In this document: positions 33,180-57,100 of the stretch, piece by piece
Layout: the number at the start of each line of letters is the position of its first letter
Numbering within the stretch: the first letter of the stretch is position 1
NCBI GenBank assembly: GCA_000708835.1
Contig: DF236980.1
Location: 98,890 to 162,889 of the forward strand
Reading direction: 5' to 3'
Source: Klebsormidium nitens
Lineage: Eukaryota > Plantae > Klebsormidiophyceae
Length of the DNA: 64,000 nt
The notes under the pieces: model-generated
Seen by the model: the letters and a program-made list of their open reading frames with translations, nothing else
What the model was told of the DNA's origin: nothing
The model's database searches: none
Program-made: the position numbers and the translations under genes

Positions 33180-35343
33180 ATGAACCTGTAAGGGCCGCCA
33201 GCAGGCGCCATGGGCCATCTCCAGCGCCGGCCCTTGATTGCTAGAGCACTGTACGTGAGAGGGTGCTGTTGATCGATCAGCTTTGAAATTTTGCGGCAGG
33301 AGCTTGTCGCTCACAATCGAGCATCTAGGCTCCTTCAAAAAACGCAGAGATGGAGAAAGAAAAGCTCGGAAAAGAGGAGCCAAGGGTGCGGCCATTCAGG
33401 CCATCAAATCTCAATCCCAGCGCGATTTCAAAGCTGTCAAAAAAGAATTTGAGGAACGCGTGACGGAAAAGGAGACCGTCAGCTTAGATCTCCTGAAGCC
33501 ACAGTCTAGCAAATGGTTGGAAGACATCCACAAGGAACTTTCATCTGACGATGCTGAGACGCGCTTGATTGCCCTCTGGAGGTTCAAGGCTGTACACAAT
33601 CGCGTGGCAGTGTTCAGAGGACCTGCAGCATGCGCAGAGTTCACAACCTTCGCCCTTCAAAAAAGGCTGGTTCTTGCGGAGATTGTGAGACTCCTGAGGG
33701 CTGCGCAGGTGCATGGTGACTTGTATTTCTTCCCTCTTCCTCGAGATTCACTCGAGATTGACGACTTCTTTTCCAAGACACAGCTGTGCTTCGGTCTGCT
33801 CAACACACTGATGATGGATTCCCGCGCCGTCCGCCATGTTCGGAAAGCAATACCGGACTTGATTGACCTTCAAGAAGCTTCATACTGTGCGGAAGCCCTT
33901 TGTGACTCCGGTTTTGGAGAGGTCTTGGATGCTCATCAGCAGTCACAGAACAAGAAGGCAGTCCTCTCCAGCATGGTAGCACTTGCTACTTTTTCAGAGC
34001 AGGCAAAGGCGGAGCTAGGAAAGAGGACAGCCTTCCTCCGGCAGGTGCTGGTAGAATGCACAGAAGCAGATGGATCAGAAGACATGACATTAGATTGCGC
34101 GATGCTTCTCGTCCTACATCTGAGAGGTGCGTGTCCATTTTCGGAGCTCGCACAGGAAATCGTGCGGCTAGCCATGCGAGTCCTGGGAACGTCGATGAAG
34201 AGAGAGGTCATTCAAGTGACTATGGCAGTGCTGAAAAAAATGCTCAGAATCGAAAGGGAGGCTTTGAAGGTTCAGATAAGCGACGCTTGCGACTTCTTCC
34301 CGCTCTTGGCTCTGGCCATCTCTAGCGCAGTTCCGAAGGAATTGACGGCACCAGCTGTGGAGATCTTGTGCTTCGTAGAAGAGAGTCTCGAGCAGCCAAT
34401 TGAATCCAGCATCGAAACGATCCTGCTTAACCTTGTATCTCGCCAGCAGCACGTGAGCTCAAGGTCTCTGGACGACGAGAGTCTCAAGCTCTTGGAGCGA
34501 AAAGAGCAGTTTGAAAAGATGTTCAAAGTACAGGGTTCGGGGCCAATTGCACAGCCGCCCATCGGGCTCGGCAGCGAGGCCATTGAATACGCAAGTTTCG
34601 AGAAAGGAGCAACTTTATTTGAGATGGAACCAGAGGACCGGCTAGAGCGCTTGCCAAATCGCACAGTTGTATCTTCGGAGCCAACTTGGAGACCTCGCAG
34701 GAAGTGCTCTCGTGCAGACTGTACCAGACTGGAGTCCAAGCCGCAGGAGTTCAAACTGTGCAGCGGATGCCGTCTTGCTGTTTACTGCTCGAGAGGTGAT
34801 TCTCCCTTCATTTATGCTGTCTGCGAGGGTTCGTATATTTCTGTCACGATGCTTCGTCCCATTGAGTGCAGAGATTGGTGAATTTTGGAAAAAGACTTCA
34901 TGTAGCGAGCGACCAATCCTTGAAAGGTCTGTCTACTTGATCCGGATCAATCTCCATGGTTCGTCTATTTGTGGCGTTAAGTTCAGAGCTAGGATCTCTC
35001 GTTACTGCTCCAAAGTTTTCCGAACCAGGGATCTCACCAGAGTCCGTCATGATTCACTGATCATGTAAGTGGAGCACTCATAGCGGTTCCTTTCGCCAGC
35101 GAGTAAGAGGGACTAAGTAACGTGTCCAGAACACCGTGTGAAAGAGATCAAATACGTGAGGTTTCAAACTCTTTTTTCGTCTTGACAACATCAGAAGAAG
35201 CATTGCAACAGTCTACTTGAGAGTCTAATAGTTACGCCAGTTCTTCTCCTTTCGCAGACTGTCAGAAGAGGGCTTGGAAAGAAGGACACCGGGAGGAATG
35301 CACAAAGAGCGGTTTGAAGGGGAAGAAAAGGAACATTAAATGA
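33180..35343 (+). CDS. zf-MYND domain protein with helical (ARM-like) N-terminal region, tandem copy 2, ~529 aa
   Basis: MYND finger CSRADCTRLESKPQEFKLCSGCRLAVYCSR|DCQKRAWKEGHREEC. Best model: exons 33180-33187 (ATGAACCT|gtaagg), 33300-34795 and 35258-35343, totalling 1590 nt in frame. The 5' end is less certain. Confidence 0.8.
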
Positions 35344-36777: not shown

Positions 36778-39700
36778 TCACCGCCCCTCATTGATCCCCG
36801 TGATGTCGTACTGCGTCGTATTATGCAAGACCGTCGAGCTGTTCCCTTGACTCCAGCTAAAGTGAGTCGCCGCGGGCGAGCTCCCCGAGCCCGCGGAGCT
36901 CGGCCGCACGGGCGTCCGCCGGGTGCCGCTCCCGGCCCCGAGACTCCAGTCGGAGCTAGTGGTCGGGTACACGTCATGCACATCCCCCGACCGCTCGGGG
37001 GAGCCGAGCGGCGATGCCGGGACCGACCCGCTGGGGTTTAGGGTTTCGAGCGTGCGCAGGACGTCGAGCATCGGGGGGCGCCGGTCGGCGGACGGGTTGA
37101 TGCACGCGAGCGCGAGCTGCAAAAACTTCTCGGCCTGTTCTCGGAAGTACTCGCCGTTCAGGCGGGGGTCCATGATGGTCAGTGGCTGTTGGTGCCGCTT
37201 CAGCACCTGCGCACGGAGAGAAGAGCGTCAGAATTACAACTCTGCCTGAGAAGGTGCTGGACTGATATGCTGCGTTATGTGTAATGTTTCTGGTGGCGAC
37301 TGTCTTGCTCTTCTGTGCTGGTCGCCAAATTTTGGAACACTTGTAAAAGACCGCAAAGGCTGCAGACGAGGTATCCGACGTCTAGCTTCAATTGGTTCGG
37401 GTGCTGGCTGAGAACGTTCCCGGCTGTGACGGAACTCTCTCCAGCCAGAAAGATTACGGCAACCAGCGCACCAAACGCTAGAACCTGCAACGAACGGTAT
37501 GGGGCAACTTCGCAAAGACACAGAAGTGTTGCACAGAACGCATCTCGAAACGAGTGCGGGCTAAGGAGACTTAACGACGAAACTCTGCATTTGTCAGGAG
37601 AGATCGTTTGTCTCCTGTTCATGGCGGCGCCAAGGCCATCGAGGTAGACATTCTCCGTAACCCAGGAAAGGTTTGCCTGTTGCTTCAGGGGGCGGAACAT
37701 TTGAACTACGCAGTCTGTGACAATGCCTGCGAAAACCAGTAAAAAATGGTCGATGAGCGCTCATGAGAAGACCAGATTTTCCACTTACCCAGTCTGTCAG
37801 CGTGCGCCGCTCCCCAGACTGCGCGACATCGAGAGCCTTGAGCCCAGTGATGATTTCCAGTAGTACCACGCCAAAGCTGTAGACGTCAGTCTTCTTTGTA
37901 ACCTGGCACGGGAAGCGGGAGAGAGCGTTATGGCGCAGGCTAGAAGAATATTCCAACCTGATCGACTCTCCTCACACTTCTGTTTCAGAGGAGAACGAAA
38001 TAGTGCGTGGTGGCATGAGCAAGGACTGATGCACGTCCGGCGAAGCAAAGGGAAAGAATGGTTTACGAAGGCGTGCGGTTTCATCGGACGAAGGAAGACT
38101 TTGCTTGGCATCGACGAGGAATCGTGAGGCATCTTGCATCATTTGAAAGCCAAGACTTCTTGACAGAGGAAAGAAGTACAGCAAAGCGGATGGAGGCCTG
38201 ACCTGTCCGTACATAGCGTATTCTGGTGCCACCTGGAGCACACAACGGGATAAGCGCGTGAGAACGGTGACGGTATGTGAAGTCAAGCCGCTATCCGAAA
38301 CCAGGGAGCTATTTGAGGCGACGACGCCCGTAATCTGACAGGCTGAGCAAAACGAGCTTACGTGCAGATAAGTTAAGAACGGCTTACGGATCGGTATACA
38401 GCATGCCTTGCTTCCACTTAGCGCAAGTGACAAGACCCAAGCTTCGGCTTGAAAGCGATTCAATCTCGATGCAAGAATGACAGATAGGTGTGCATCAGCG
38501 ATGCGGCAAAGTGGGCTTGCAAGCGACTTATGCAGTCTCGACAAGGTAGAGTGTACGCACATAGCCTGCAAAAGGGCGAAATCAGTGGTCAGTCAAAGTG
38601 AAGAAAACGGACTTCAAGGACTGCCGATATGCAATTGAATAGATACTGGAGAACAGGATAATGGTGTTGGACTACTTGCTTACAAGCACTATCCTGTTGG
38701 AGGAACTGATCCGTCGGACTGGCCTCTGATCCTTTTGACCGCCCTGTCCATCGCTTTCACTCTTTCGCGGTATACAAAAAGAAGGTGGATGCACGAGAGG
38801 AGACCGGAAGCATTTCTTTCAATCTCGACAAATTTCGAAGCATGCAAGCCACGCCATGCCCAGTATAAGCCGGCAATCACCCCATGCGCTACACATTTCT
38901 GCCCACAGGTTCGCAGCAGGATGGACTAACGGTGCCAAGAGCTCACCGTAAGTTCCCCGTACACGCGTGCTGTGATGCGTTTGGCCGGAGTCGAGCAGCT
39001 TGGACAGCCCAAAGTCCGCCACCTGGCAACTCAAGAGGCAGCCACGTCAGCAGCGTAAAATGGCACCGGGGGAATGCGAACGGCGATAAGGCACAAGAGA
39101 CGTGACGGACGCGCTTGTAGAAGCAGACCACTTCGATGACGAATCAATGTGATGGCAAATCGACTGAACGAGGTTGATTTATGGAACCACGTCTACTGGG
39201 GTGGAACGTCGGCCCTCTTAAACATTCAGGCCTGCAAACATTCTTGAGCATTCGAAGATTGGCCCCCATTATGCAATTGGGAATGCAGACTCCTTAACAA
39301 ACTGGTCTCTTGAGATAAGATTTATCAAAACTCGATACCAGGCGGTAAACCCCTCCGACCTTGTCCTACAGTCGGCTAATCAAAGACTTCTTCCAACAAG
39401 TCGCTCGACACGCATCTTCCCATTTGTCGCGCTCCTAGCATGGCACGCTTAATTCAAGTCATTAACTCCTCAAAGTACAAAACCCTACCTCCGCCTCCCC
39501 CTCGGAGTCCAGCAGAATGTTCGCGCTCTTGATGTCCCTGTGAATGATGGTGGGCCGGCAGTCGTTGTGCAAGTACGACAGTCCCCTCGCAGCGCCCACC
39601 GCAATGTTCATCCGCTGGGGCCACGTCAGAGGCGGCCGGGTGGCTGCCAAACAAAACGGATAGTGGGTCGACGTTAGCTAGAATTCTGTGATTTGAGAAG

Positions 39701-42700
39701 GTTGTAATCTTGAGAAGAGCGGCTTACAGTTGCGAGTGCATGTTGAATAGCCAAAATATTTTGCCCTAAATTTCGCTGGGAGCATCAGACACGGTGTTGC
39801 TTCGGTTAGGTCAACGAAGCTGGCAAGTCCGGATTCTGACAAATCTGCTCAACAATACGCTTCTGCTTCGGTTAGAACGACGAAGCTGGCAAGTCCAAAA
39901 TCCTGACAAATCAGCCAACGCAACGCCCACAAGTCAGGAAACTGCCAATGTCAACATATGGTAAGAACGCTGTCATCGTCACCGACACGCGACTCCTGCA
40001 ACGATTTGCGGAGGAATAAGTACTGGGCTCGAAAGGCACCAGGAAAATCGTGTAACAAGGAAAATTGTTTCAGGGGGTACTCACGGCTCCTGAGCGCCTG
40101 GTCCAGGTTCCCCCCCGCCGCAAAGTCGAGGATGAGGAAGCAGTCGGCGGCAGTAACGCAGAAGCCCTTGAGGGCGACCAAATTGCGGTGGCGCACGCGC
40201 CCCAGGGTGCCTAACTCCGACAAGAACTCGCTCTCCGCTTGCCCCTGCCAAGAGAGATCCCAGATGTAGACGCAGTTTCGGTTTTGCAATTAAGCAGCGG
40301 CGGATCAAAGCTGTTTAGCCGTTTGTTAGCCGCAGGTATAAAAAGCCCCTTAATAGAGCAGACGATGTTCCTAAACCTTCGGACTTGGCAACGTCATGCT
40401 TTGAAGGGTTTTGACCTTCAAAAATGTGAGCTCAGATAGTCCAATTGAGAGGTCAGGGTGAGGTCCATAGCGGATTGTAAATGGAAATGGACGTTGACAT
40501 GTTGAGAGCAAGCCCATGTGCACTAAGAGTTGTGTCGCCGACAAATGGCCGCACATGAGACTCAGCAAGTATGCTAACGGCAGAATGCTGGGAGCCAACA
40601 CCTCCCCTTGCTTTACGAACGTCAGAATTGCCTATCGATGTTGTGTAGAACTCAACATTTTCACAGAAAAGGCCTAGGAAAAAGCAAGATTCAAATCATA
40701 TACTACGGAAGACATTCTTCAAAAACATTCTTCGCAGAAAATATTCTGATCAGGCACCAACTTGGCCTACCCGGAGTAATTGTAAAGGAAGGACACAAGG
40801 TGAGAGGCAAAATATAGAGCAGTATCACTGATCCGGTTAGACCCCCACCTGCTGCGTGTTCTTCAGGTGCTTGACTGCAAGCATGGTCCCGTCAGCAAAA
40901 GTGCCCCTGTATACCTGCACAAAATGAAACAGTATATACACGTTGTCAATGTAGCAGCCTGAGAAGGTCGCACTCAAGATGAGGCTGTACCCGTCTGTCG
41001 AACCACAGGCATCAATCTCGTCCTCTAGCAGGGCTTGGTCCGTTTGTTCGGGATCGTGTCTGAACCGGAGTAAAGCGAGCCTACTACCGTTCCCACGTTG
41101 AGAAAGGGGTGCAGTTGCTGTGACCAGCCGTTGTATCGGAGTGAGCAATCAGTCCCTTGAGATGTAAATTGCCTCTCCTTCGGGGACGCGAAGCAAGAGC
41201 TGATGAGCCTCGGACAGACCTCCAAGAGAAGACTCACTGCCTGGAACGGGCAAGGCTTCAAAGCTTCAAAGCTCGACACTTTCTCCTGCGTGCTCAGATT
41301 CAGAGCGCTTCCCGAAAGCAGTTGCCAGACTAGAAGCCTTACCAAGCCAAAGCCTCCCTCTCCAAGAAGGTTCGCGGCGGCGAAATCGTCAGTCGCTTCC
41401 TGAATCTCCGGGTAGCCGAAGCGGCGGAAGGTGCCAAACAGGGCCTTATCAGCAATGTCCTCACGACCTGCGCACGGAGGAAAAAGGTGAGGGGGTGGCA
41501 AATTGAAGACAGATCTTCTGGCAGGGGTTCTTGATAAGTCTCCAAAAGTGGGTCTTCTGAAAGACTGTTTTGAAGCTTTGAACAGCAAACAGACTTTCGA
41601 AAAACTTCCCCTTCGAAAGAAGAGCGGACGAAGAAATCCGACCGAGGAGTCATGTGCAAAATTTCCAGCGGGATCGTGAAACGAAGGCCCTGGAATGGGC
41701 GCAAAATCCTTGAGCAGGATCGTGGGATCTTTTGGGCGAAAGATCCTGGAAAAGGACACTGGAAGGAACCAAGCAGAGGGTCCTCTAACGGTTCCCTGAT
41801 CTTCTCCAACTAACCGGGAACAAGAACTCAGAAGCGGAATCACCTGGGGTAGGAAGTGGGCTGTCCCCCCCCCTGGAACTCGCCGCTCGCGCACTTAGCG
41901 GCCTCTCCAGCGCCTTCGGGGGCTGCGCAAGCTCCGGCGGCGTTATGGGGGGGGGCAACCGCGGCTTCCGCTTCTTCCGGCGTATCAGCAGAGCGATGAC
42001 GGCGAGAACTAGAGCGAGGCCAACAACTCCCCCCACGACTGCGCCGATAATGACACCGATGCTTGAACCGCCCCCCCCGGAAGAAGTGTTGGTCGTTCCG
42101 GGGGCGTTGCTAGGGGTTGGTCCGCTGGGGGTGACGCTGACGCCGCTGCCGGAGGGGGGGGTGCCACCTGGAGGACAAGGATTGGCCATTGAACTCAAAA
42201 AAATTAATTATCAAGCCGAGATAATATAATTTAACCGCACTGGGACGGGTAGGGTTAGTTTGGTGCTTATGGTGGGTATGGGCGCGGAGGAGGTATCTTT
42301 TTGGGTAGGGTTTTCAGTGTAAGTCGAAGCTTATATTATCTTGGCTTGGTAATATCTCTTTGAATTTTGTGGATTGGCCGCCGCTTAGACGAGATAAGAG
42401 AGAGTGTGATGCACGGAATGAAGTGGAGTGTGAGCGCGCGACTTTCGCTGGCTACAACAGAAGCTTTTTGAATAAACACGGGCTAACGGTGGAACACCGA
42501 CGACTCAGTGAAGTTTCTTCGTAATTAATAATCCAGTCCCGTGACTGAAAAAGCGAACAATATCTGCGCATTCAATCCTTCAAGTGAAAAGCGAGTCGAA
42601 CAAAAGCCGCAAAACTCGGCTGCAAATCTGTCCGAACAAAGACAGGAATTTGGATGCAAGGACGCACAAGGAGCGGTGCACTCACTCGTCAGCTGTGCCG

Positions 42701-45700
42701 GTTGCCCTACGCTAGTCACAAGCACCTCTCCATACTGTGCCGTGCTCAGGTTAAGCGGCTGCCCCTGCTGGAGCACGCCTGAGATTCTTGACACTGTCGC
42801 GTTGTCCAGAGTGGGCCCAGAGAGCGGGACGACGTTGGTGTCAAGCAGGATGCTGCCTTGCGCCACGTTGGTGTAGAGGATCTGGGACGGCTGGACGCCG
42901 ATGAGACCCGCGAGGTCGTTCGAGAACGACTGCACGGGAAAAATTTAGGATTTGTTTCTGATCGTCCAGTTAAAGAAGTTGACAAACATAGGAACAATCG
43001 TTCTGATAAGCTTTGAACTTTGAAGTTCTCGAGCGGAATATTTGGCAAAACGGATTTGTTTGTAAATGTCCACGGGAAGAGGCAATCATGAACTAATCGT
43101 TCTGAACTTCGACGTTCGAGCGGAGGGTTCGGCCAAAAGGAGTGGGCAAAAGAAAAAGCGAAGCGAATGGAAAGGGCTTTTGAATTTCCGCAGATAAAGG
43201 ATAGGACAAGAGAAAATCGTGAGGTCAATTGTCAGGAATTAAAGGACAGGAGGGGCACATGTGAGGAGTAGGTATGGGGAATCAGACAGAGACTAGACCA
43301 GGGCAAATCACCTGTTTGCTGCAACATCTCGTTGGAAGAAGGAGCTGTGTCTTCACTAAAGCAGAAAGCCAGAACAGGTCACGCTGAAAACCGCTAATTC
43401 TAAGCATAGCCAAGAAATACGGGTAGTATCTAATCACAGACGACTGGAGGAGGGGGCCGATGGGGAATTGATAAACAACACTTCAGTCGAGTCTGCCTGC
43501 TTCTGAATTATTTTTCAGGAGGCCTGCTCGAGTATTGCAAACCGTGGTCAAGGTCTCAGACTTCGAAGCAGTGGCTGGAGCCAAAAGATAAGAGCATTTG
43601 TGGTGCTAATCAACTACTCCGAGCAGCCAGAGAACGGTGTAACGCGCTTCTTAACCCGCAGCTTTGCACTCACCGACGAAAAGATCGTGGTCCAGTCCGC
43701 CAGGTTCCTGTTGACCATCCGGTAGCTGGCAGTGAGCGGGTAGTTGCAGCTGCAGGCAAGAGCGGTTGCCGCGATCCCCGGGGCCTGCCCGGTGGGGCAC
43801 GTGCAGACGGGGGGAGGGGGCGAGGCTGGCAGACAAACGCCAAGAAGAGCATATGAGAGTTCTGTTGACTTCGTTCAGGAGAACGGCTCATAAAGGGTGT
43901 GATTTTGCCTGGACCGAAGTCCCCAATTCTTGGATCGATGCGTCGAGTTTGGGTGCCCTTCAAATTCAAAGGAAAAGGGGCTTTTGGCTTGGCCTTTTGG
44001 CGGCGGAAAGCAGAGCTCTTTAAAGATAGCAATCTGGTCGACCAATGAAACTCGGATGAGGCACTCCGTCAACTAAAACCTTAGCAGGGACTAGCTGCTA
44101 CGGAGCTTTCGAACAACATGTGCAAGCCAACGAGCAACTGACATCGATCTAGAAGACATCCTTCCAACGTCAGATTGGCACTCTAATATTGAGCCCATAC
44201 CTGGGCCGCCCAACAGGCCACCAGTGGGAGCCGGGGGAGACGGAGTCGCTGCCGGGGGGGGTGGCGCAGGAGGGAGGGTCGCTACTTCTGGGGGGGGGAA
44301 CGCAGGAGGAAGAGTGGTAATGATTGGGGGGGGTGGCCTGACGTCAGGGGTGACGATGACAGGAACAGTTGGCAGGGGCGGGGGAGGGGCTCCTGTAAGA
44401 GACGAAAACTAGCATGGGAATGGTTTCTGAACTGAGGAGCGCAGCGCGGAGGCTAAGCTCAAGCTCAGCTGTCACTGTTACGGAGAGAGACAATTTTGCT
44501 CAGGGCACATACATCCAATGACGACTGTGCTTTCACGGATGGACCAAGTCAAAATGGACATCCTTCCAGTTGAGAACCTTGAAGCTCAGGCCTACGAAAT
44601 TGCAACCGATGGCTGCAGCGCGTTGGTGCCAAGACAGCAGCTTGCGCAGTGGAGCATCGACAACAGCCCAAGTGACCGTTTCAACATATCTAGGTAGGAG
44701 GGCTTCTACTGATTGCTTACAGGAAGGAGGGCTCCACTACTTGCTTACAGGAAGGAGAGTTCTACTATTTGCTTACCTGGCGGCGGCGGATTGGGCGGCG
44801 GGGGGGGTGGAAGAAGAAGCGGAGGCGGGGCCGACGCATTTGTTTCTATTGGAGGGGGTGCAGTCGCGTTTGTAGCAACGGGAAAGGTCACATTTGGTCT
44901 TGGGGGGGGAAAGGCGGGGGGAGGGGGGTTCAGAGGCGGGGGGGAAGATGCGTTCGTGGCGAGGGGGGGTGGCGGCGCGAGGAGGGGGGGTGGCGGGGGG
45001 GGTGACGACGCGTTTGTTGCTAGCGGGGGGGGTGACGATGCGTTTGTCGCTAGCGGGGGGGGAGGAGCGAGCAGGGGAGGAGGGGGGGAGGTTACATTGA
45101 CCGTTCCGTTTGTGGGGAGCGGAAGCGTTCCGTTGAAGATCGGCCCTGGCGCGGGGGCCGAGACGGGACCGGTGACGTTTGCAGTTGCGTTGACCGGGAG
45201 GGGCAGCGTAACGTTCGCAGCGTTCGGGCCCGCGGCCGTTACGTTGGTCCGGTTGGCAGACGGGGCGGGGGCCGGTACGGTCACGTTGAGAGGCAACGGA
45301 ACCGTTCCGTTGATGGCTGTTCCGTTCAGAGTGCCCGTTCCGTTCAAGGGGACCGTTCCGTTCAGAGCGGTTCCGTTTGCGAGACTCGTTACGTTACCCG
45401 CTGTGGTGTTTGTAAGAGTGCTGTTTCGGGAGACAGGGGAAGGGGCCGGACCCGGCGCAACTAGGATGGTGGCAGGGCCTGGCGCGGGCGCTCCGGCTGC
45501 CGGGCTCGAAACTGCAAATTGGAGGGGTAAAGAGGTGAGATGAGCTGGGCTCAGAACTTAAGAAGCGGGGCGGTTGAAAGGTAAGAACTTGAGAGAAACG
45601 GCATTATTTCAGTGGCGACTCGCCAAGGCAGACAGGCCAGGCCGAAGGTGACAAGACGCTGATTGACGTGCTCGAAAAGATCTCAGAAGCGTTAAGGATG

Positions 45701-48700
45701 GCCGTATTTAGGCTCAGGTCAAGGACAGAAGACAAGCTGAGAAGCTTCAAGACAGACTGCTCCATTGGGGTGTCGAACCATCCTTAAAGCGCAAACAGGG
45801 TAGCCAAGCCACGAGAAATGTACGCACTTATAGACGAAAGACTGCGAATGCCTTGATTCTCTCGCAATCATTGAGCTTCAAGAAGTTACCGGTATGTCGG
45901 TCAACAATCAGACAGACTGTTCTTAACAGACGCCACCCACTACCGTCCGACAAAGCTCACCGGCTGTCAGGCTTGCAAGCGCTGCCAGGCTCGTAGACGC
46001 GCCAGTGTTCCCTAACAGCAGGCTCGAATTGCTGGCCCCCAGGCACACGTAACCGTTCCCACTGAACCCGTTGCGGCAGGCGCACGTCAGGTTGGCGGTC
46101 CGGGACCCTGGGGTGCAGACCGCGTTTGCGTCGCACGGGTTGTTGGGGCCGCAGTTGCAGTACGCGCAGTCTGCAGAAACAGACGACACAGAGTGCAAAT
46201 TGTGCTTTTTTTGTTTTGCTTGCTTTTGGTTTCGATCTTCCAGTGTTTGCTTTGCTTTTTGTTCTTTGTTAAGGATACTTTCTGATCAGTAAGAGGCAGG
46301 CCTTCTCTGTTGGTCACTGGTGAATGCTCTTACCGGCAAGATGCTCGGGAGCTCCGGTACTTATGCTGGCCCAAACTCTAATTGGGGTCTTTCAAGGCTT
46401 GCTTTTGAGTGAGTTGCTTCGTCGATCGGATGCTGGCATATACCACAGGCCGAAAAGGAGCCAATGAATCACATGAAGTTTGAATCAAAAGGCACGCACA
46501 TGCCTGGACATTCGATAGAGTCTCTCACCTGTCGCAAAGACTCCCCCCACGTCCGAGATGAACGCCAGGTCCGTCGGTGCGACCGGACAGAAGCGCGTCG
46601 CCTCGCTGTTTGTAGACCCCGCCGCAAACAAGCTCGTTCCCGTAGTGGCGCTGTTGTTCACAAAAAGCTCCGGGCTACAGAAACTGGTCTGCGCGACGCT
46701 GTTCGAGACAGCGCCCCCCTGGGGAGCGGTGTTTTGACTGAAAGCGTTGCCGCTGAGAACAGTGAACGCGGTGCTCACAACCGCGCCACTCTGAGAGGCC
46801 CCGTCGTCGTGCACAGCGCCGCCGCTGACCTGGGAGGAAAAGAGGGGAAACGTTGAGAACAAGGCCCCGAGTGGACCCCGTGCTTTTACAAGAGTTCCGC
46901 GCAACTTTGACAAGGGGAACTTGGGATATCAAGCAAGGCTTATCGTGTTGTCCAGTGTTTCGAAGCTCTTGGACGGGTGAAATTTGGACAAACAAGCCAT
47001 CAGATTGGCCACCTCAGTGTCAGTCATCCATCACTTCAGCTTTTTGTGTGTCTCAGGCAAAGTCCTCCGCCCGTGCTTGCCAGGGGTAGGAGTTGCACCA
47101 GCTTGCTTCCCAGGCTCGCCTCTCTTTGCTTCTCGCGACAAGGGCCTGCTCTGTTTACGTAAGCTGGCACCGTTTTCCGAGGAGCAGTCGATTGTAACTT
47201 GCCAACTCTTGCACTCTTGACAGTCCCGTAGAAAAAGAAGTCGTTGTTCTGTCGCTTGTTTTCTGACCCTTTCGTACTCAGGTTTCGCGACTCACTGTGG
47301 CCGTATTTCCGGCAAATGTGTTGCCCCCGATCGACGCATTCACTGTCCGCACCCCAACAAAGATCGCCCCCCCCTGCTGCACCGTCGCTCTGTTCCCCAC
47401 AAACAGGCTCCCCCTCACAACCGCCGGAGCAGCTGTTTGTTGCAGGTAAACTGCGCCCCCAAGAGGCGCACTGTTTGCAAAGAAACTGGAGCTGAGGATC
47501 GAAGCAGAGCCCCCGGCCGCCTGGAAAGCACCCCCGCTGGCCGTCGCGGTGTTGCCAGTGAAGGTACATCCGACGAACGTGGCGTTCGCGCCATTGGAGA
47601 AGACGGCGCCGCCTGCAGCAAACAGAAAGAAGATTCTTTGGCTGCTTAGGGTCTCCGGATCTGTGGTTTAAGGGAAGCGTTTAGCTTTTATGAGAGCTTG
47701 AGTGGTTGATGTCGAGGTTGCGGGAGGAAAGATAGTCGACGTGGCAAGCAGACAAGATGATAGAGTTGACCTCTCAGACCCTCAATCTTTCCCAAGGCCG
47801 TAGTTGCAAAAATATCTTGTTTGTAAGCACCCTCCGTGAAACAGGTGTGAAGCTACAGGTGTGAAGAAACAGAACTCAGTTTCGACTACGAGTTTCTAAG
47901 AAATCTACGATGCGAGCATACCTTCATCGGCAGCATTGTTGGTGAAGAGCACGTTGACAAAGGTGGTTACGGAGTTGGTGCTCAGCAGCACAGCCCCTCC
48001 CGTGAGGAGGGTCCCAGTCTGACTGGACAGTGCCTGGACATGAACAGCAGGTGTAGATAAGCCACGCCCTCAAGAAATGAAGGGCGACAACCGTAACAAA
48101 TAATGTTTTGTTTCGGCACTGAATGGAGACAAGCAAGTCAACCTTCGAGTCAACATTCTGCTCATCCTTTTGTTTCTCTTTTGAAGTGCAGCCACGCATA
48201 CTTGTGCGCTAGCAACATCAAGGAAGGGCGTCAGGATACGACACACTCGGCCAAGGCCAAACATGACGACTTCAACGTTTCAACGGCACTGCTCCTGGAA
48301 CGAAACGCACGGAATTTCAACCGTGCGTTGCCAGACACCGCAGAGTCGGAGGGGTGCTTACCACTCCAGAATCCAGCTGCAGGTTTCTGAAAAACACAGG
48401 CCCCGTAGACGGCGCCACGCTAAACATCTGGTTGACCTGCAAAGGGTTGGACCAAGGTCTAAATGCCTGCGCAATCTCTGCTCGCGCCAGATTCGATTGG
48501 TGGCGAGTAAGAGCGAAGCGATGGTTCAATCTAGCCCTTCTGCCAAACAAACCACCACCACAGAGTGGTTCCAGAATGCGCTGGTGCTTGTCGACAGACT
48601 GAAGAAGTGACATTTTCATTCGATGGCCCATGGGGCCATGAATGTTGTTTCTCTAGCAAGAACGAGCTGGACAGTGGCGCTCACAGTCCTAGGCAGGGCC

Positions 48701-49955
48701 GCCGAGATCTTGCATCCTGGGGCGCTGCAGTTGCCCTGCACTGTAAGTGGCGCCTTCACGACGAGCGTGGCGGTGAGGTTGACATTGCTGCAGGCATCAG
48801 GCGCCAGAAAACATTCTATTAGAGCAGTGCTCTCCTGACTGGGATCCTGAGTGGGCTCTGTTAGTACAGTACATCAAAACTTGACAGAGCCCAAGGATGC
48901 AGAATACGAATCGTTCGCCAAATCCAACCCCGTCTTGGCTATCAACCCAACAATTGACCACCAGATATCGTGCTTTTGATGCATCAAAATGGTCACTGAA
49001 AGAGGTGGTACCCAAAGCGGGGGCTGAACCCAGCAACAGGAGTCCTTGTTTCCTGTCCACAGGCTCTTTGAGGAAGGCTAGTCACAGGAAGTTCAGAGCC
49101 GCATCAGAAAGGTTTCTTATCCACCTCCGGTTATAGTCTGCGACATCATGGCCGTGCAATGGGGATCCCTTGCCAACATTTTTGATCAGGATCGGACATT
49201 TAAGTCCGCCTCTAGTTTTACAGGTTTACAAGCTCGAGCCCTCAAGCTCCGGCAAAAGGCTAGGGAGATCTCGTGCTCAACTTATATGAGGTAACCTGGT
49301 CTTGGTGGTGGCAATCCAAGCTACAGCTTGAGGCCTCACCTACAGATTGTGACGACAGACCCTGACGTTGCCGCCGCTAGCGCCGTCTGCAGCGAAGACT
49401 CATCAGACACACCCTGACACACACGCTCAACTGCAATTCAGAAGCGCCACCATATTATGTTGCTTGTTGCTGAATCCTTCAAATGTTGAGTGTCTGGCAA
49501 GTCATGGGATTCAGTCTCACTAAGATGAACCATATTGCTCCATGTTCTCTTTAGCGGGGGCCAAGCTTCTAATTGGAGCGGAAATGCTGGGCATGCTCCA
49601 GGGGCTTATTGCCACCCAGCCAGTGGCGGCAGGCTGACAGCCTGTTTCACAAAGGAGCAGGCAACTACTTCTATGAGTATCGCATCTTGCAACGTTGAGA
49701 GAAAGGGCAAACATCTACAAGATCTCAGGAAGCTGCCACCTTCTCTAATAACAAGGTGCATCTCTTCACACACAAGCTCAAAAATGGTCATATGCTTACA
49801 GTTACCCGCACGCCATCAAGATAGCGCCTTGTGTTCTACTTGGTGTCAGATTGATCTGCATCGGCATTGCTCATCTACAAAGTATTCTTACCTTGCCCTG
49901 CAACCAGTCCAGCTGCAAAGAGGGCACACAATAGGAAACTTGCAGAAAGATGCAT
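36778..49955 (-). CDS. Receptor-like Ser/Thr kinase (RLK/Pelle, ALE2/extensin-like) with signal peptide, Pmp-like beta-helix, EGF, glycosylated Pro-rich stalk, Cys/SEA-like domain, TM and RD kinase; 22 exons, ~1342 aa
   Basis: Exons 49892-49955, 49340-49430, 48685-48787, 48362-48436, 47922-48033, 47296-47612, 46529-46829, 45961-46170, 44777-45511, 44201-44392, 43674-43825, 42686-42929, 41895-42167, 41343-41467, 40849-40914, 40085-40244, 39489-39643, 38947-39022, 38561-38565, 38203-38232, 37789-37902, 36778-37206 total 4029 nt with every junction GT-AG and in phase. Signal peptide [21 protein letters not shown]; [28 protein letters not shown] followed by RRKKRK; kinase motifs [41 protein letters not shown]. 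Confidence 0.9.
38561..38565 (-). other. 5-nt coding microexon (GCTAT) of the receptor kinase
   Basis: Minus strand ...gactgaccactgatttcgcccttttgcag|GCTAT|gtgcgt. It supplies GGC TAT (GY) between ...GGGACTTACG| (phase 1) and |GTGGCACCAGAA (phase 0). Confidence 0.88.
39798..39912. repeat. Imperfect tandem duplication, 66-bp period, in an RLK intron
   Basis: tgcttcggttag....acgaagctggcaagtcc.....ctgacaaatc at 39798 and 39864. Confidence 0.85.
44692..44779 (-). repeat. Three 28-bp tandem units, each carrying a GTAAGCAA donor-like sequence, at the start of the intron after RLK exon 9
   Basis: cttac (minus-strand gtaag) at 44716, 44744 and 44772; unit approximately (t/c)ctact(g)attgcttacaggaaggag(g/a)g. 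Confidence 0.85.
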
Positions 49956-51176: not shown

Positions 51177-54100
51177 ATGGCAGCTGAGAGGCATGGAAGT
51201 CTGTGGGAGGAACCGCGAAGCTTCTCTCCTTTTGCAGACTCACGTTACTGCAGGCTTGCATTCCTACAGGATGGGGCTTCGCAAGTGGCCTCCCTGCAGG
51301 ACACAGTCAGCAGTGTCATTCAGCAGCTCCACAAGAGAGTATTCACACTACAGCAACAGTGCGCCCAGCGAGAGGCACTCCTCAACGACACTATGCTAGC
51401 ACTGCGTCGCAGGGCCTCCAAAAGGCGTCAGAAAGAACACCAGGGGTGGGTCTCATACAGCAGGCTGCGCTCGCAGAATGCAGCCAATAGCGTGGCGCCA
51501 CATGGCGGGCTGGCAGGTGACCAGGCCTTGCAGAAGGTGGTGGCTGGGCTGCAGTTTGACTGCCAGGTAGGGAGTGAACTGTTGCGGAAGATGCGGTGTA
51601 AATGGGCCCTGGCAGCGCTGTTTGGAGCTCGCCAAGTGGCGCAAGCTCAGCGGGCGCTGGCGGAGGAGGCGCTGTGGAGGCAGAAGGGTAAGGAAGCTTA
51701 GGATTGCCCTCGCAACCGGTTCGTATACTTCCCGTTTTGATAGGAAGGTGGTTGGAACAGGAAGGAGGTTTCGGCAAGTACAAAGTGGTGTTGAGTTTGG
51801 AGAGGGCTTCAGCTGGGAAGAAGAGTGCTGGGCGCGGGGATATTGTGTCTGATGGCAAGGTGGTGTGAAAACAGGAGGCCTAGACCTTGATGTAGCCACC
51901 TGTCTAGTACTTTTCGATATCTGTGGACGGGTCAGAATGTGATTATAGCGCTTTTTCAGCAAGCTACCGGATCAGAACACTGGAAGCTTAGAGTAGGTCA
52001 ACCAAGTTTGAAAATCCTGTAGCCGAGAACTAACTTCGACTACTTTCAGATTAAAGCCAGTAGGTCTTTTGGAAAGGGCTGTGATATGGAGATGCCAATC
52101 CAACATAGAAATTCTCCTTCCCTCTGTACACAGCCCCTCCTCCATCCCTCCTTCTGGGCCCTTTGGCAAAGTGGTGTCAACACAGGAGGCCTGGGGCTGG
52201 AGGCAACCAGCTATCTATCAATCGCATTGTGAAGAACAGAAAACAAGGAGATTCTGAGTAACTACAAGAATTAAGAAAGAGTAAGAGCGTCGGCTCCCTC
52301 ACTTCGCAGAGCCCCTCCTCCGCCCCTGCTTCTGGGCCCTCTGGCGCAACGTACTGCGCCGCCGCACCAAACACACCGGCACTGCCCGCCCCCGTGCCAC
52401 TGCCCTCTCCTTCTGTCGGCGTCGCACTCTGGAACGCTTCCTCAGACGATGGATGGCCTACTCGAGAAGACGGATCATTCTTTGGGCGACGCAAGAGGCT
52501 GCGATGGAGAAATTGAGACGCAGAGTGCTGAGAAACGGATTGAGGGGATGGAGAGCTTGGCAAAAGAAGAAGGTTTGGATGAGGGACGCGGTTGAGAGGG
52601 CGCGCGAGTGGAAGGAGAGGCGGCATCTAAGGCTGTGCTTTTGGGGATGGCAAGGTGAAGCCGGCAAGAGGAGAACGTTGCTGGAGCGATTGATGTCCCC
52701 TGGAGCGAGGAACAAGGGTGAGTTGGCTACTAAACTTTTGTACTTCTGATGGTGACAAGGGGGAGCTTTCTTCTTGTAGGGCCTCACTTTGAAGGTTTGT
52801 CTGTTGGTGGTGCATTGATGGTTTTGGGATTGGACGATTGAAAGATGCAAACGCAGAGGGGTCTGATTGAACAGACACAGAGAGGCACTCGGTGCCAGGC
52901 ATCGTCGGGGAGTATAGAGCAGCTAGACGGCCAGTTTGAGATCTTGAGAGCCTATCTGCTCTCAGTCGTTTGGTTTTGGAAACGACAAAGGTTTTGTTCG
53001 ATGTTTGTTTACGACATAGCGGTTAAGGCATGGCCAGCACATTGATGCCTTTCCTTTGAGTCGTTCGCTGTGTTACGGCTTCAATTATTCTGGATCGTTG
53101 CTTCAAGTGAAGTGAGTCGTCTGGGGAACGATCTGGAAATCGTAGAAGAACTGTTATCCGAAGTTTGCGAAACCAGTGTTCGGTGGTTCGACCTAGGTCT
53201 CCGGCATGAGCTCAGCTTTGTTGATAAACGGTTGAAAGGTCGAATTGGACATCCAGAGGCTGATTGATCGGGTTCTACGATAACTCGGGGTATACCTGGT
53301 ACGTATCCTCCTCTGAGAAGCTGATCAAAGTTCCTTCTCAACTCTAGCTAGTGCGAGCGTCTCTTCCACAAACGAATCACCACAGCATCTCGCCGTTTTC
53401 AGCATATGTTGCATTTACTCAACGATTTCACCTGATCTAATAGTCTCAACGGGAACGTCCGTTCTGACCGTCCGCTATGCACTTTGAAGCAGGTAGCGAG
53501 CGCGTTTTCACCCCTGCCCACTACCACGCGTCCCCCTCATGGGCGCCGAAAAAAGCACGCCACGTGGCATTGGTCTCCTTCAGCCACGTGGCAGCCCACG
53601 ATCTCTCCAGCCCCAGGGGCCCTCTCGATCCGGGCGTTTCTCACTGGGCCGTAGCGCTGCTTCGAAAGATCGATTCTGCAATCGAGATCCGAACCGCTCA
53701 ACAGTCGGCCGGACTTGAAGATCTGCCGAAGGAAAAGCAAGAGTACGGTCAGCTTCGCTCTGTTTTCGCGTCGGCGTCAGCCGGGGGAATCCGGAGCAGC
53801 CAGCGGCAAGAAAACGAGATCACAGCAAACACGTCAGATCCTCGGACGGGAGTGTTCACAATGGAGGACGCGTGTGAGCTCTATCACGCTCGCTCTGTTG
53901 CTCAGAGGGCACTCCTCGCCTGGAAGAATGAGTGTGAACGCACTCGAAGTGCAATGGACTTCGCACGTGCGTCTGAAGAGGTTCTTAGAGCAACGAGAAT
54001 ACTTCGCGGGTGGCTGTCTAGCCTTCGGCGGCGAAAGAATGCCGCAGAGTCGCATTGGCGGGCGGCAGTGATTTTGAGAGTATTCAAACTCTGGAAGAAG

Positions 54101-57100
54101 CGCGCCCGACAGTCTGCGCTCCTCAGGGAGCAACTAGAGGCCGCCCTGAGGGGCCGGAGACACCGGTCCCTGAGCCTGGCTCTGTGGGGCTGGCGGGAGT
54201 GGGGTGTGAATAAGCGCAGGCAGCGGGAAAGGATTGCAGAGGTGGAAGTTGAGATACTGCGCAGGCGATTGGAGGCAGCGTTTGGAGCGTGGCGGGGGGA
54301 AGCCGCGAGAAAGGGGAGGAAGAGAAACGCAGTTAGGAGGGGGTTAAAGGCGGGTTATGGGCGGGTTTGGCGGCACTGGGCGTGGCGCGCCAAAGCGCGG
54401 GTGCTTCTGCGGCGGGTCTTTGCAGAGGGTGAGCGCATGTAATGTGTATCGTCCTTCTTCCCAGATAGGAGGGCACCTGAAATTGGTGTCGTTTTGTTTT
54501 GTGTTCAGACGCTGAATGCGGTTGTGTTCAGCCGGTAATTGCTTCTCTTTTGCAGATTGTTCAACGTAGACTCCCTGTCGGCCCAGTTTTTGACGCTTAT
54601 TATGATCTTCTATGCGTCGCTTTTTAAATTCTTCTATGCGTCCGTAAGTCATCTTCCATGTAACGACTGTCCAGTCGCTCTGGAAATGACTGACTAGTGA
54701 CGTCGTCTCAAATTTGACAACGCTGGAGCATACAGACTGACACTCAGGAGTCCCGCATTTACAGCGGAGGCCCGGTGGACTGTCGCCGCGCGCTTCCCAA
54801 GCCACCACTCGGAGTTCCAGGCCGCCCTGGTGTGCTTCGCCACCTGGCGCGCGTTCACACTCCATCGCGCCGCTGACCGCGCCGAGGCGGTGCGAACGGG
54901 CGCCGCTGACGTGTACAACCGGGCTCGTTTGCTGACCAAGGCCTTCCAGGCTTTGCGGATTCCGGTCGACGAGCACCGGGCGCAGAAAAAGGAGGAGCTG
55001 TTCCGGCGGAAAATGCTGTGGGCGTGGCGGAAGTGGGCGGAACGGAAGAAGGACGGAGCGACGGCAAGGGTTTTGGCGAGGTTCAGGGTGGCAGCTGGCG
55101 GGCGGACGGTCGGGGAGTTCAACCGGGCGCGAGTTCTGCGGGGTTTTGTGCGGGTTTGGAGGCGGGCTACGGAGGAGAAACGTGCGCGGGCGGAATCGTA
55201 CCGGGCGAGAAGTTCTGTGAAAAGGGCGTTAAACGGATGGGTAAAGATTAGGGAGGAGAGTCAAGAACGGGTGGCTGTTCACACCAGAAGGTGGGAACGG
55301 GTGGAATTAGGTGGCGTGTTGAACGAGTGGAAAAAATTGGGGTTGGAGAGGAAGGAAAGGGAGCGGAAAGTTGAGGTGGGGAAAAGGAAGGTTGGACGGA
55401 GATTACAGGAGGTGGGGTTGGAAGCCTGGAAGGCTTACAGCGAAAGCAGGTAAGTCCCCGCTCTGTTTCGAGGTCTTTTGAGGTTTTCTGTTCTTGTCTT
55501 GCTCGCTCGTAATCCTTTTGCTCTGAATACTTAGGCCTTCAATGTAAGGACGCCGCAAACACTTCCTTTCCGGTGGAACGGAACAGTGAAAAGGACAAAC
55601 TGACATCGGGTACCTGGGGGAAACGAGAACCCTTCAGAACCCTTGGCCTTTAAAACTGTAGTGCTCTTAAAAGCTGAAGTGTGACAGACTAGCGTGTCAC
55701 GTATACGAACTCCGTTCCAACATTCGATCTTTACACTGCCCCGAACCCTTCCTGTGGGTGCTGTCTGCTCAGACCAGTAATCAGGTCCTCGTTTTGTCCG
55801 AGTTTTTGAACCCGTTCTTAGGTACTAAGCCGAAGAGCAGAGACAGAAGGGCCGGCCTTCACAGCCACGTTAGCAGAGCTGCAGGCCTGCATGTCTCCGC
55901 GGTTGAACAATCATTGGATGGGGCGAGCTGCAATTCAACGTGTTTCCTTGCAGTCCCTCCACACCAGATTCGACTCATTCACTGCACCTGGACTCTTAAG
56001 CCGCACATTGTGAGTGGCAGATTTTCAAACTCACGAAGATTCTTCAAGAAATTCGCTTTCTAGCTTCTCCTCGATTCATCTTTTTAAGCTTCCTCACGTC
56101 TGACTCCTCTGCAAACCAACTTTTGCAGGCGACACAAGCGCAGCGTCTCCCTCCTAGCGCGTAAGCACGCGTCCCTTCTCCTGAAGCGCCGCACCTTACG
56201 CTCCTGGCTGGCGCGTTTCGCGTGGAGAGACCTCAAAGAACGGGCCAATCAGCTGCGAGAGCACAGGCTCAAGCGCGCCACGTGGCGCGCTCTCATTCGC
56301 CACACGCGGGAGTCGCAGGTCGTCCGGGACTTGGTCATTGGGTCCCGCACACGGGGCTTCAGCGTGGCGACCAGCTTGCACTCCTCGCGGGCCAGAGTGT
56401 CGCTCCTTGGAAGCGGTCGGGTGACGCCTAGGTTTGGGCAAGGAACGCCCAAGTCTGGCCGGGATACGCCAAGACTTGGTCGGGCGACTCCGAGAGCTGC
56501 TCCGGGGAAGTTGAAAGCCGGGGGGGATCCCCCAAAACCTGCTCGGAAGACGTCCAATTCAGCGCTAAAAACAACAAAAAGTGATCGGAAGGAACTCACA
56601 TCTGGCTGGGTCACGCCCGAGTCTGGCCAAGAGACGCCAAGCCTTGGACGGGGGACGCTGACAGCTGCTCGGGAGGGTTCGAAGATATGCCGGCAGGCCC
56701 CAAATCCTGCTCGGGAGACGCCCAATCGAGCTCCGGACAGTCCAGAGTCTGATCAGCAGAAACCCACGTCGAGTCGGGGCACGCCCAACCCAGCTCGACT
56801 TATCGAAGAATCTGGTCGGGAAGAGCTCAAGACGGCGACCAACTTCAGTGAAGGACAGGCGCTTCGGTCGGCCCGGGGCGTACCGCAAACGTCTCGGTTT
56901 GCTGCGCTGGAAGAAGGGGAGAAAAGGACGCGAAAGAGCGGGATCAGACTTCGCAAGAAAGGGTTCTCGGAAAATGTGAGCTCAGGATTGACGGCGATTG
57001 GGGTTGAGGGTCAGGGAAAGGGCAGCGGAAAGGTCACGGAGAGGCTGATCTCCGAAGGGAGAGCCGTCGACAAAGGCGGAGCTTTGCGAAGAGTTGCCGG

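Follow-up and report, generated by a model that had tools for sequence, protein, structure and literature searches.

Background

Receptor kinases are the sensors by which plants perceive walls, neighbours and microbes, and little has been recorded of how RLK ectodomains were first put together in the algae from which land plants descend. According to one review, the RLK ectodomains of Klebsormidium are of the LRR, Pro-rich, extensin and C-lectin types only, and WAKs are specific to land plants.

Several described systems resemble parts of the gene analysed here. WAKs combine an RLK/Pelle kinase with an extracellular EGF-type module and a head presumed to bind a wall polysaccharide (pectin). 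In PERKs, the part of the RLK/Pelle kinase outside the cell is Pro-rich and extensin-like. In ALE2 and the 'extensin' RLKs of land plants, a Pro-rich segment is accompanied by a cysteine motif, a compact membrane-adjacent domain and an RLK/Pelle kinase. Pmp-repeat surface proteins of bacteria and archaea (the chlamydial Pmp family, 'outer membrane repeat proteins' and Methanobrevibacter adhesin-like proteins) display a right-handed beta-helix of GGA[ILV]...FxxN repeats (Pfam Chlam_PMP) at the cell surface. Their anchors are autotransporter barrels, Ig-like domains or wall-sorting signals, and they have no kinase.

Gene structure

The window, that is, the whole stretch of DNA analysed, comprises 64,000 nt of Klebsormidium nitens (GCA_000708835.1, contig DF236980.1, positions 98,890-162,889, forward strand). 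Overall, it is best explained as containing what is probably one intact type I RLK/Pelle receptor kinase gene, with a putatively glycan-sensing beta-helix/EGF head carried on a rod. The gene lies on the minus strand (49955 to 36778) and consists of 22 exons (Table 1), which together read as a single open frame of 1359 codons, uninterrupted from the ATG at 49955 to the stop codon at 36778-36780. All introns are GT-AG and 248-744 nt in length.

A signal peptide opens the encoded protein and leads into a capped beta-helix, in which the GGA...FxxN repeat occurs seven times; an EGF-like module and a proline rod follow. Between the rod and the membrane helix lie a four-cysteine motif and a juxtamembrane domain that is conserved, and beyond the helix is an RD kinase. 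All peptides quoted in a preliminary description of this DNA were found on the minus strand, and the architecture it proposed was borne out as one colinear, phase-compatible gene. The phase-1 introns it had placed around the EGF and stalk exons are present, exons 8, 9 and 10 being phase 1-1, as is exon 13.

Table 1. Exons of the receptor kinase gene, with positions in the window
Feature	Position	Strand	Content
Exon 1	49892..49955	-	Start codon and signal peptide (hydrophobic core); ends in phase 1; donor GTAAGA
Exon 2	49340..49430	-	Beta-helix N-terminal cap (helix and first strand); 66% identity to L001
Exon 3 (revised)	48685..48787	-	First rungs, Cys-x5-Cys loop; placed via P0008; 76% identity to L001
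Exon 4 (revised)	48362..48436	-	Beta-helix rung; 80% identity to L001, equal length (75 nt)
Exon 5	47922..48033	-	First GGA...FxxN repeat; 81% identity to L001
Exon 6	47296..47612	-	Four GGA...FxxN repeats, right-handed beta-helix core; Chlam_PMP; 86% identity to L001
Exon 7	46529..46829	-	Final two repeats and C-terminal cap, two Cys; 74% identity to L001
Exon 8	45961..46170	-	EGF-like module, 8 Cys; phase 1-1; 79% identity to L001
Exon 9	44777..45511	-	Pro-rich rod, 30% Pro, 23 N-x-S/T sites, Ser-Pro3-6 motifs; phase 1-1
Exon 10	44201..44392	-	Second Pro-rich segment, 43% Pro; phase 1-1
Exon 11	43674..43825	-	Four-Cys motif (C-x-C ... C-x-C-x-Y-P) and first strand of juxtamembrane domain
Exon 12	42686..42929	-	Extracellular juxtamembrane domain, conserved; invariant Q-G-S-I-L-L-D segment
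Exon 13	41844..42167	-	Ser/Thr/Pro/Gly linker, transmembrane helix, basic stop-transfer, cytoplasmic juxtamembrane segment; phase 1-1
Exons 14-22	36778..41467	-	RD protein kinase domain and Ser/Thr/Pro-rich C-terminal tail; Pfam kinase matches
Exons 14-18	41467-41343, 40914-40849, 40244-40085, 39643-39489, 39022-38947	-	
Exons 19-22	38565-38561, 38232-38203, 37902-37789, 37206-36778	-	
Exon 19	38561..38565	-	5-nt microexon completing G-Y of the G-T-x-G-Y motif; required for frame

The head exons were compared with the orthologue L001 and with P0008, a paralogue from Klebsormidium subtile whose transcript-derived sequence bears the label of a complete ORF. Exon 1 has a weak L001 counterpart ~450 nt upstream of exon 2, and residues 1-30 of P0008 align with it. 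Exon 2 aligns with P0008 residues 29-56 and has AG and GT at its borders in L001, while exon 7 aligns with P0008 residues 258-356. Exons 3 and 4 were first modelled at 48995-48881 and 48855-48685, which keeps the frame but needs a 25-nt intron; moreover, 48995-48881 is absent from L001. They were moved to 48787-48685 and 48436-48362 because P0008 and L001 place them there; in the exon 3 region, the blastn match to L001 spans 48801-48676.

A plus-strand ORF at 44713-45543 (276 amino acids, Gly-rich) is the mirror image of Pro-rich exon 9 and was rejected as a gene. No paralogue was found inside the window, where the only matches were low-complexity proline matches to a neighbouring gene.

Conservation in related algae

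In three loci from related algae (L001, L004 and L005), exon content, exon order and phases all agree with those of the window gene, and only the exons show similarity. In L001, exons 2-20 are collinear on one contig (amino-acid identity 44-96% per exon), which places head and kinase together. Nucleotide similarity to L001 ends at the exon edges, AG and GT stand at the projected borders, and introns cannot be aligned; lengths differ only by multiples of three. As far as genomic sequence can establish it, the exon match is far beyond chance expectation and the reported gene architecture is real.

Searches for a transcript or annotated protein of the window gene (exon 7 against 1.84 billion representatives; word searches with exons 12 and 22) found none. 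Word searches with P0008, exon 12 and exon 22, covering proteins up to 1.75 times the query length, returned only orthologue fragments or bacterial/archaeal Pmp proteins. That neither transcript nor annotated protein emerged from the representatives and word searches would suit a decaying or non-functional duplicate of a simpler head-TM-kinase paralogue. Such decay is, however, highly improbable, given that the frame is intact, that orthologues are 57-100% identical exon by exon with all length changes in-frame, and that conservation extends to all the kinase motifs, the C-terminal tail and the 5-nt microexon.

The beta-helix head and EGF-like module

Pfam scans were run exon by exon. Exon 6 matched Chlam_PMP over three stretches (29.2 bits against a cut-off of 20.6, E 7.5e-7) and gave 23.7 bits with Beta_helix, whose cut-off is 25.9; seven GGA...FxxN units can be read in the translation. 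For exon 8, EGF_3 (26.3 bits, E 8.7e-6) fell below its cut-off of 28.5, and EGF reached 14.5 against 21.5. The cysteine spacing of exon 8 fits the EGF pattern, and the P0008 model is of low confidence in the EGF region.

The evidence for the fold of the head comes from the predicted structure of P0008, a homologue 39% identical to the head from end to end (E 1e-85), not of the window protein. This model is a beta-helix with pLDDT >90 over residues 30-330. Compared with solved structures (VIA-align), it gave Z of 23-27 across 250-285 residues with polysaccharide epimerases and lyases, tailspikes, a polygalacturonase and the adhesin PfbA. On the strength of this model, the head is a predicted capped, right-handed parallel beta-helix of Pmp-type rungs.

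The best structural matches of P0008 were alginate epimerases/lyases, the lyase RbmB, PL6 lyases and polygalacturonase (Z 23-27), so that the head could be an enzyme tethered to a kinase, for instance a lyase or epimerase acting on polyuronates or other polysaccharides, and not just a passive binder. This seems unlikely, since identity to those enzymes is merely 9-19%, the sequence-family match is to the Pmp adhesin-type repeat and not to a lyase or hydrolase family, and no catalytic motif was identified in the head. Adhesins and tailspikes score in the same Z range as the enzymes. Structural matching does not tell a binding head from a catalytic one.

Bacterial contamination was ruled out as the origin of the head because its exons are separated by spliceosomal introns that are kept in the related algal loci. 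Among 1.84 billion representatives, exon 7 had 18 matches, none of which was a full-length model or contained a kinase; the closest were ORF fragments from related contigs.

One gene or two

P0008 ends five codons beyond the equivalent of exon 8, within what is intron 8 in the paralogous locus L003. As this transcript-derived sequence is labelled a complete ORF, and as no transcript of the window gene was found, exons 1-8 might be a secreted beta-helix/EGF protein lying next to a separate stalked receptor kinase (exons 9-22), their phases fitting by chance. Such a division into two adjacent genes is rather improbable. Exons 9-12 encode extracellular sequence, predicted to be glycosylated, which would then lack a start codon and signal peptide: there is no Met in exons 9-10 and only one in exons 9-12, internal and without a signal peptide after it. 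Intron 8 is just 449 nt long, and neither blastn nor tblastx revealed conservation with the orthologue that could indicate a hidden first exon within it. With no usable Met in exons 9-12 and an unconserved intron 8, exon 1 is the only signal peptide available to these extracellular exons. In addition, the phase-1 donor and acceptor are retained in L001, a paralogue at only 39% identity retains the order and phase from head to kinase, and the tail of P0008 resembles a retained L003 intron donor, not a normal terminal exon.

The end of P0008 inside the intron-8 equivalent does, however, indicate that head-only products may exist. A single gene could yield both the full receptor and a secreted head-only isoform, by retention of intron 8 or intronic polyadenylation, and the latter could serve as a soluble binder or decoy. 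Read-through of the exon-8 donor meets a stop after 12 codons in the window and after ~12-13 in L001, so a retained intron would give a short, secretable protein. Two products from one gene are a possibility to be taken seriously, if still a minority one; a Trinity contig from unspliced pre-mRNA would look identical, and P0008 represents a paralogue of a different species rather than the window gene itself.

Rod, cysteine motif and juxtamembrane domain

The rod is ~310 residues long, with 23 N-glycosylation sites (N-x-S/T) predicted from sequence. Its features (Ser-Pro3-5 motifs and high Pro content in exons 9-10) are those of an extensin/HRGP-like rod; Ser-Pro3+ motifs occur four times in exon 9 and once in exon 11, and no Tyr cross-link motif was seen. 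The L001 counterpart of exon 9, 945 nt long, contains 26 such glycosylation sites and 28% Pro. The two exons share only 43% identity, but differ in length by a multiple of three.

All four Cys of exon 11 are invariant, and the exon shares 74% identity with its counterpart in L001 and 92% with that in L005; exon 12 is 83-95% identical across four sequences. The preliminary description had termed this region 'ALE2-type' and 'SEA-like', labels which are unproven. The domain is split by an intron; exons 11 and 12, scanned separately, matched no Pfam family at E up to 10, neither of them matching ALE2_N or SEA. With exon 12, a PDB profile search was blank and a metagenome scan gave no match. Folded alone, exon 12 gave an unreliable model (pLDDT 46), and the Atlas placed a SEA cluster at rank 3 (score 0.82), a weak lead. 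The C-x-C...C-x-C-x-[FY]-P motif and the V-P-L...D-N-x-T...G-x-Y stretch that follows are presumably ALE2-like, which we take as a lead only.

An invariant G-S-[ILV]3 lies between two predicted strands of the window domain and, in the SEA topology, matches the position of self-cleavage. Exons 11-12 might accordingly be imagined as a SEA/ALE2-like module that would cleave itself at G-S-I-L-L and hold the head non-covalently, a pull then shedding the head or straining the domain and activating the kinase. We regard this as a long shot. If it were true, the lineage that gave rise to land plants would contain, in this protein, a mechanical sensor of wall integrity belonging to the mucin/Notch/adhesion-GPCR type.

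Membrane helix and kinase

Exon 13 encodes a hydrophobic stretch of ~24 residues followed by R-R-K-K-R-K; TM_ErbB1 scored 24.3 bits on it, under its cut-off. The gene model therefore reads as a receptor, with a hydrophobic leader (exon 1), an ectodomain, one TM and a cytoplasmic kinase.

Exons 16, 17 and 21 matched Pfam PK_Tyr_Ser-Thr and Pkinase. The best PDB match of exon 17 was BAK1 (3.6e-18), then FERONIA, BRI1, SYMRK, SOBIR1 and IRAK1/4, and those of exon 16 were BRI1, CERK1 and LysM-RLKs. The Gly loop, VAIK Lys, alpha-C Glu, HRD, DFG and APE are all intact in the translation, with an arginine before the catalytic Asp (an RD kinase). Judged by these motifs and matches, the kinase belongs to the RLK/Pelle (IRAK) family. 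Kinase exons 14-22 are 82-100% identical in the orthologues, and the 5-nt microexon, with its AG and GT, is kept in L001, L004 and L005.

A paralogue without the rod

In L003, the same type of head and EGF module is spliced in phase 1 straight onto the linker and TM exon, without exons 9-12. The L003 linker and TM exon is 42% identical to exon 13 (E 8e-12), and its kinase exons are 72-76% identical to those of the window gene. L003 and P0008 thus share with the window gene the capped Pmp-type beta-helix, the EGF module and the phase-1 junction after the EGF exon, but L003 has no long glycosylated rod, four-Cys motif or juxtamembrane domain. It also lacks the two introns flanking the microexon, both present in the window gene, so the 5 nt are not a separate exon there.

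Because L003 joins the head directly to TM and kinase, these parts appear to travel together, with exons 9-12 (1323 nt, phase 1-1) as the variable cassette. The movable element is thus probably the rod with the cysteine/juxtamembrane block and not the head, whether gained in the window gene or lost in L003. The earlier proposal that a head had been grafted onto a stalk/SEA/kinase module is probably the reverse of what happened. The two genes display exon-cassette modularity, the same head and kinase occurring with and without a 1.3-kb phase 1-1 block, and this natural pair of long and short receptors is suited to testing the role of the stalk.

Proposed function

We infer a role in sensing the wall, or in adhesion and the sensing of surface glycans. 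The target of the beta-helix may be a polysaccharide or a glycosylated surface, belonging to the wall or mucilage of the alga itself or to foreign material. Carried on the glycosylated rod, the head would stand roughly 90 nm clear of the membrane, inside the wall or beyond it. When the head binds or is displaced, receptor clustering or strain on the juxtamembrane domain could relay this to the kinase. The gene offers a concrete candidate for a sensor of the wall or of surface glycans in an early terrestrial alga.

Comparison with known systems

The preliminary description had called the combined architecture unfamiliar among land-plant RLK classes, and no account of it was found in the plant and algal papers searched, nor any paper there pairing Chlam_PMP with a kinase. 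The head type of the window gene and its paralogue, a Pmp-style beta-helix with an EGF-like module, was likewise not found in the published RLK catalogues consulted. In WAKs, the head is GUB_WAK and not a beta-helix, and the EGF repeats adjoin the membrane with no long rod; GUB_WAK and WAK-associated domains had no Pfam match on any ectodomain exon of the window gene. PERKs have the Pro-rich segment only, without a folded head or the Cys/juxtamembrane domain.

The window head differs from bacterial and archaeal Pmp proteins in its spliceosomal introns, short helix of seven repeats and own caps. Below the head, the arrangement recalls animal SEA-domain mucin-type membrane proteins, in which a heavily glycosylated rod is followed by a small alpha/beta domain beside the membrane. 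ALE2 shares the order of parts from Pro-rich segment to kinase and, unlike the window gene, is without a beta-helix or EGF head.

Gene structure and orthologous loci

The minus strand from 49955 (ATG) to 36778 (stop) carries a single gene of 22 exons and 1359 codons, with splice sites taken from sequence. All of its introns are GT-AG and range from 248 to 744 nt. The preliminary description had proposed one phase-compatible 22-exon gene; this observation was confirmed, and every peptide quoted in it was found in minus-strand stop-to-stop translations. Exons 8, 9, 10 and 13 individually, and exons 11 and 12 as a pair, are phase 1-1. Alternative borders for exons 3 and 4 are in frame but need a 25-nt intron, and were overruled by an orthologous locus and by P0008, a 431-residue paralogue from the EukProt transcriptome of Klebsormidium subtile. 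Single exons served as input for the family scans, database searches and folds; the joined translation was used to check frame and phase and in one pairwise comparison with P0008.

The JGI metagenome contig L001, reached through an ORF fragment with 77% identity to exon 7, carries exons 2 to 20 on one strand, in conserved order and with 44 to 96% amino acid identity. In a second species, head and kinase exons thus share a contig. Nucleotide similarity between L001 and the gene is found only within exons, AG/GT is present at the projected exon borders, phases are unchanged and the differences in exon length (3, 9, 9, 210, 51 and 3 nt) are in every case multiples of three. Exons 10 to 22 were also found in two further orthologous loci, L004 (57 to 96% identity) and L005 (73 to 100%). 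The conservation of exons, phases and splice sites across these loci, together with in-frame length changes, argues that the whole reading frame is under purifying selection.

We strongly infer that exons 1 to 22 belong to one transcript, because exons 9 to 12 encode plainly extracellular sequence without a start codon plus signal peptide, intron 8 (449 nt) shows no conservation with the orthologue and the phase-1 donor and acceptor around this intron are preserved in L001. Searches of protein collections with exons 7, 12 and 22 returned no full-length protein, solely ORF fragments taken from unannotated contigs, so public annotation of the locus may be missing or cut.

The kinase region includes a 5-nt microexon (see table). 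In the paralogous locus L003 (15013 onward), G-Y-V-A-P-E-Y is in one piece with the exon 18 equivalent; therefore, the two introns flanking the microexon are either peculiar to the lineage of the gene or lost in the paralogue.

Locations of exons and neighbouring features (window coordinates unless a locus is named)
Feature	Location	Strand	Remarks
Exon 3	48787-48685	minus	placed by homologue P0008 and orthologous locus
Exon 4	48436-48362	minus	placed by homologue P0008 and orthologous locus
5-nt microexon	38561-38565	minus	supplies G-Y of kinase G-T-x-G-Y
Microexon counterparts	L001 18090-18094; L004 7603-7607; L005 5827-5831		splice sites conserved in three orthologous loci
Two similar tandem ORFs	30439-31515; 33283-34881	plus	358 and 532 aa
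ORF piece with dynamin-type GTPase start	10742-11272	minus	sequence motif
GC-rich stretch	54000-60000		57-60% GC, strong GC skew; long ORFs (542 and 713 aa) on the plus strand

Domains of the receptor

Exon 6 matched Chlam_PMP in Pfam in three stretches (29.2 bits, cut-off 20.6) and Beta_helix slightly below its cut-off (23.7 bits, cut-off 25.9). The translation of exons 5 to 7 contains seven GGA[VIF]...F-x-x-N units, which are bracketed by an N-terminal cap (exons 2 to 4) and a C-terminal cap with two cysteines. Exon 8 is EGF-like at a sub-threshold level (EGF_3, 26.3 against 28.5). The rod encoded by exons 9 and 10 is approximately 310 residues long, with 30 to 43% proline, Ser-Pro3-6 motifs and 23 N-x-S/T sites, all of them in exon 9. 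It is followed by a C-x-C...C-x-C-x-Y-P motif in exon 11 and a compact domain in exon 12. In L004, 26 residues at 2501-2578 repeat the beginning of exon 12 with 62% identity; this partial second copy, some 240 nt upstream of the genuine exon, may be a decayed exon duplicate.

Exon 13 encodes a Ser/Thr/Pro/Gly linker, a hydrophobic helix of about 24 residues and a basic stop-transfer segment. The helix (41980-42060) contains successive small-xxx-small motifs (G-A-V-V-G-G-V-V-G), and the exon matched the ErbB1 TM-juxtamembrane family slightly below cut-off (24.3 bits, cut-off 27.1), hinting that the helix may dimerise. Exons 14 to 22 encode a complete RD kinase, whose best exon matches are BAK1, FERONIA, BRI1, SYMRK and IRAK, and a conserved tail of approximately 85 residues after the kinase domain.

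The fold of the head was modelled on P0008, whose head is 39% identical to that of the gene product, using a 103-row alignment that included exon pieces from the window. The model is a confident beta-helix (pLDDT > 90 across residues 30 to 330). Foldseek gave weak E-values (best 5.9e-4) and VIA-align gave Z-scores of 23 to 27 over 250 to 285 residues at 2.6 to 3.3 Å. The structural matches are alginate epimerases/lyases, RbmB, PL6 lyases, phage tailspikes, polygalacturonase and the pneumococcal adhesin PfbA. These results assign the P0008 head to the pectin-lyase-like fold and point to carbohydrate recognition generally, whether by binding or catalysis.

The preliminary description had placed a beta-helix and EGF head on an ALE2-type stalk/SEA/kinase module. 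This interpretation was partly supported: exon-level modularity gained support, and no tool backed the ALE2-type or SEA-like labels. Neither exon 11 nor exon 12, scanned alone, had a match in Pfam, and a PDB profile search with exon 12 was blank. Exon 12 modelled alone gave a poor fold, and the SEA cluster in Atlas reached only 0.82 for this exon. As leads, the cysteine motif of exon 11 and the following V-P-L...D-N-x-T...G-x-Y stretch presumably resemble the ALE2 ectodomain, and the invariant G-S-I-L-L segment, flanked by predicted strands on both sides, recalls the SEA self-cleavage site. According to a recent paper, ALE2-N is a recognised domain.

A paralogue that lacks the stalk cassette

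The paralogue L003 is on a 49-kb Logan contig from a sample shared with the 90-100% orthologue L005. Its head and EGF are 80 to 93% identical to P0008. The phase-1 donor of its EGF exon joins the phase-1 acceptor of a single exon encoding a short Ser/Thr/Pro linker and membrane helix (42% identical to exon 13, E 8e-12), downstream of which are kinase exons 72 to 76% identical to those of the gene. Equivalents of exons 9 to 12, a 1323-nt phase 1-1 cassette in the gene, are absent from L003, and it is this difference that backs modularity at the exon level. Given the direct order of head, EGF, helix and kinase in L003, the head, membrane helix and kinase form the common core of a small receptor family, with exons 9 to 12 as the variable part. 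The direction of the proposed graft is thereby probably reversed, as L003 joins the head to helix and kinase without a stalk block; the stalk and juxtamembrane block, rather than the head, looks like the mobile part, and may have been either gained in the gene or lost in L003.

P0008 (TRINITY_DN2026_c0_g1_i1.p1) is labelled a complete ORF and contains a signal peptide, beta-helix and EGF only. Its last five residues match read-through of the L003 intron donor (alignment to L003 10696-10990), so the K. subtile transcript retains, or ends in, the equivalent of intron 8. This suggests intron retention or intronic polyadenylation. The ending could reflect unspliced RNA in the transcriptome assembly or a real secreted head-only isoform. 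Translation past the exon 8 donor in the window meets a stop after 12 codons.

Neighbouring features

The two tandem plus-strand ORFs at 30439-31515 and 33283-34881 each have a terminal Cys-rich C-x2-C...C-x2-C segment with the look of a MYND-type zinc finger, and are probably a tandem gene duplicate. Judged by its dynamin-type GTPase start, the minus-strand ORF piece probably belongs, as an exon, to a gene for a dynamin-related protein. The minus strand of the GC-rich stretch has proline-rich matches to exons 9 and 10.

Comparison with known receptor kinases

A search of the plant and algal literature, incomplete in its coverage of RLK surveys, found no combination of Chlam_PMP and a kinase; the two texts that mention both deal with peptide vocabulary and with fungal repeats processed by Kex2. 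Beyond Klebsormidium-type sequences, the head is most closely related to Pmp-repeat proteins of bacteria and archaea and to one protein from a chlorophyte. The ectodomains reported for Klebsormidium RLKs in a review are LRR, Pro-rich, extensin and C-lectin, with no others. The gene represents a lineage-specific variation on the design of plant receptor kinases, and its main interest lies in the unreported head and in how clearly it differs from its paralogue by the cassette.
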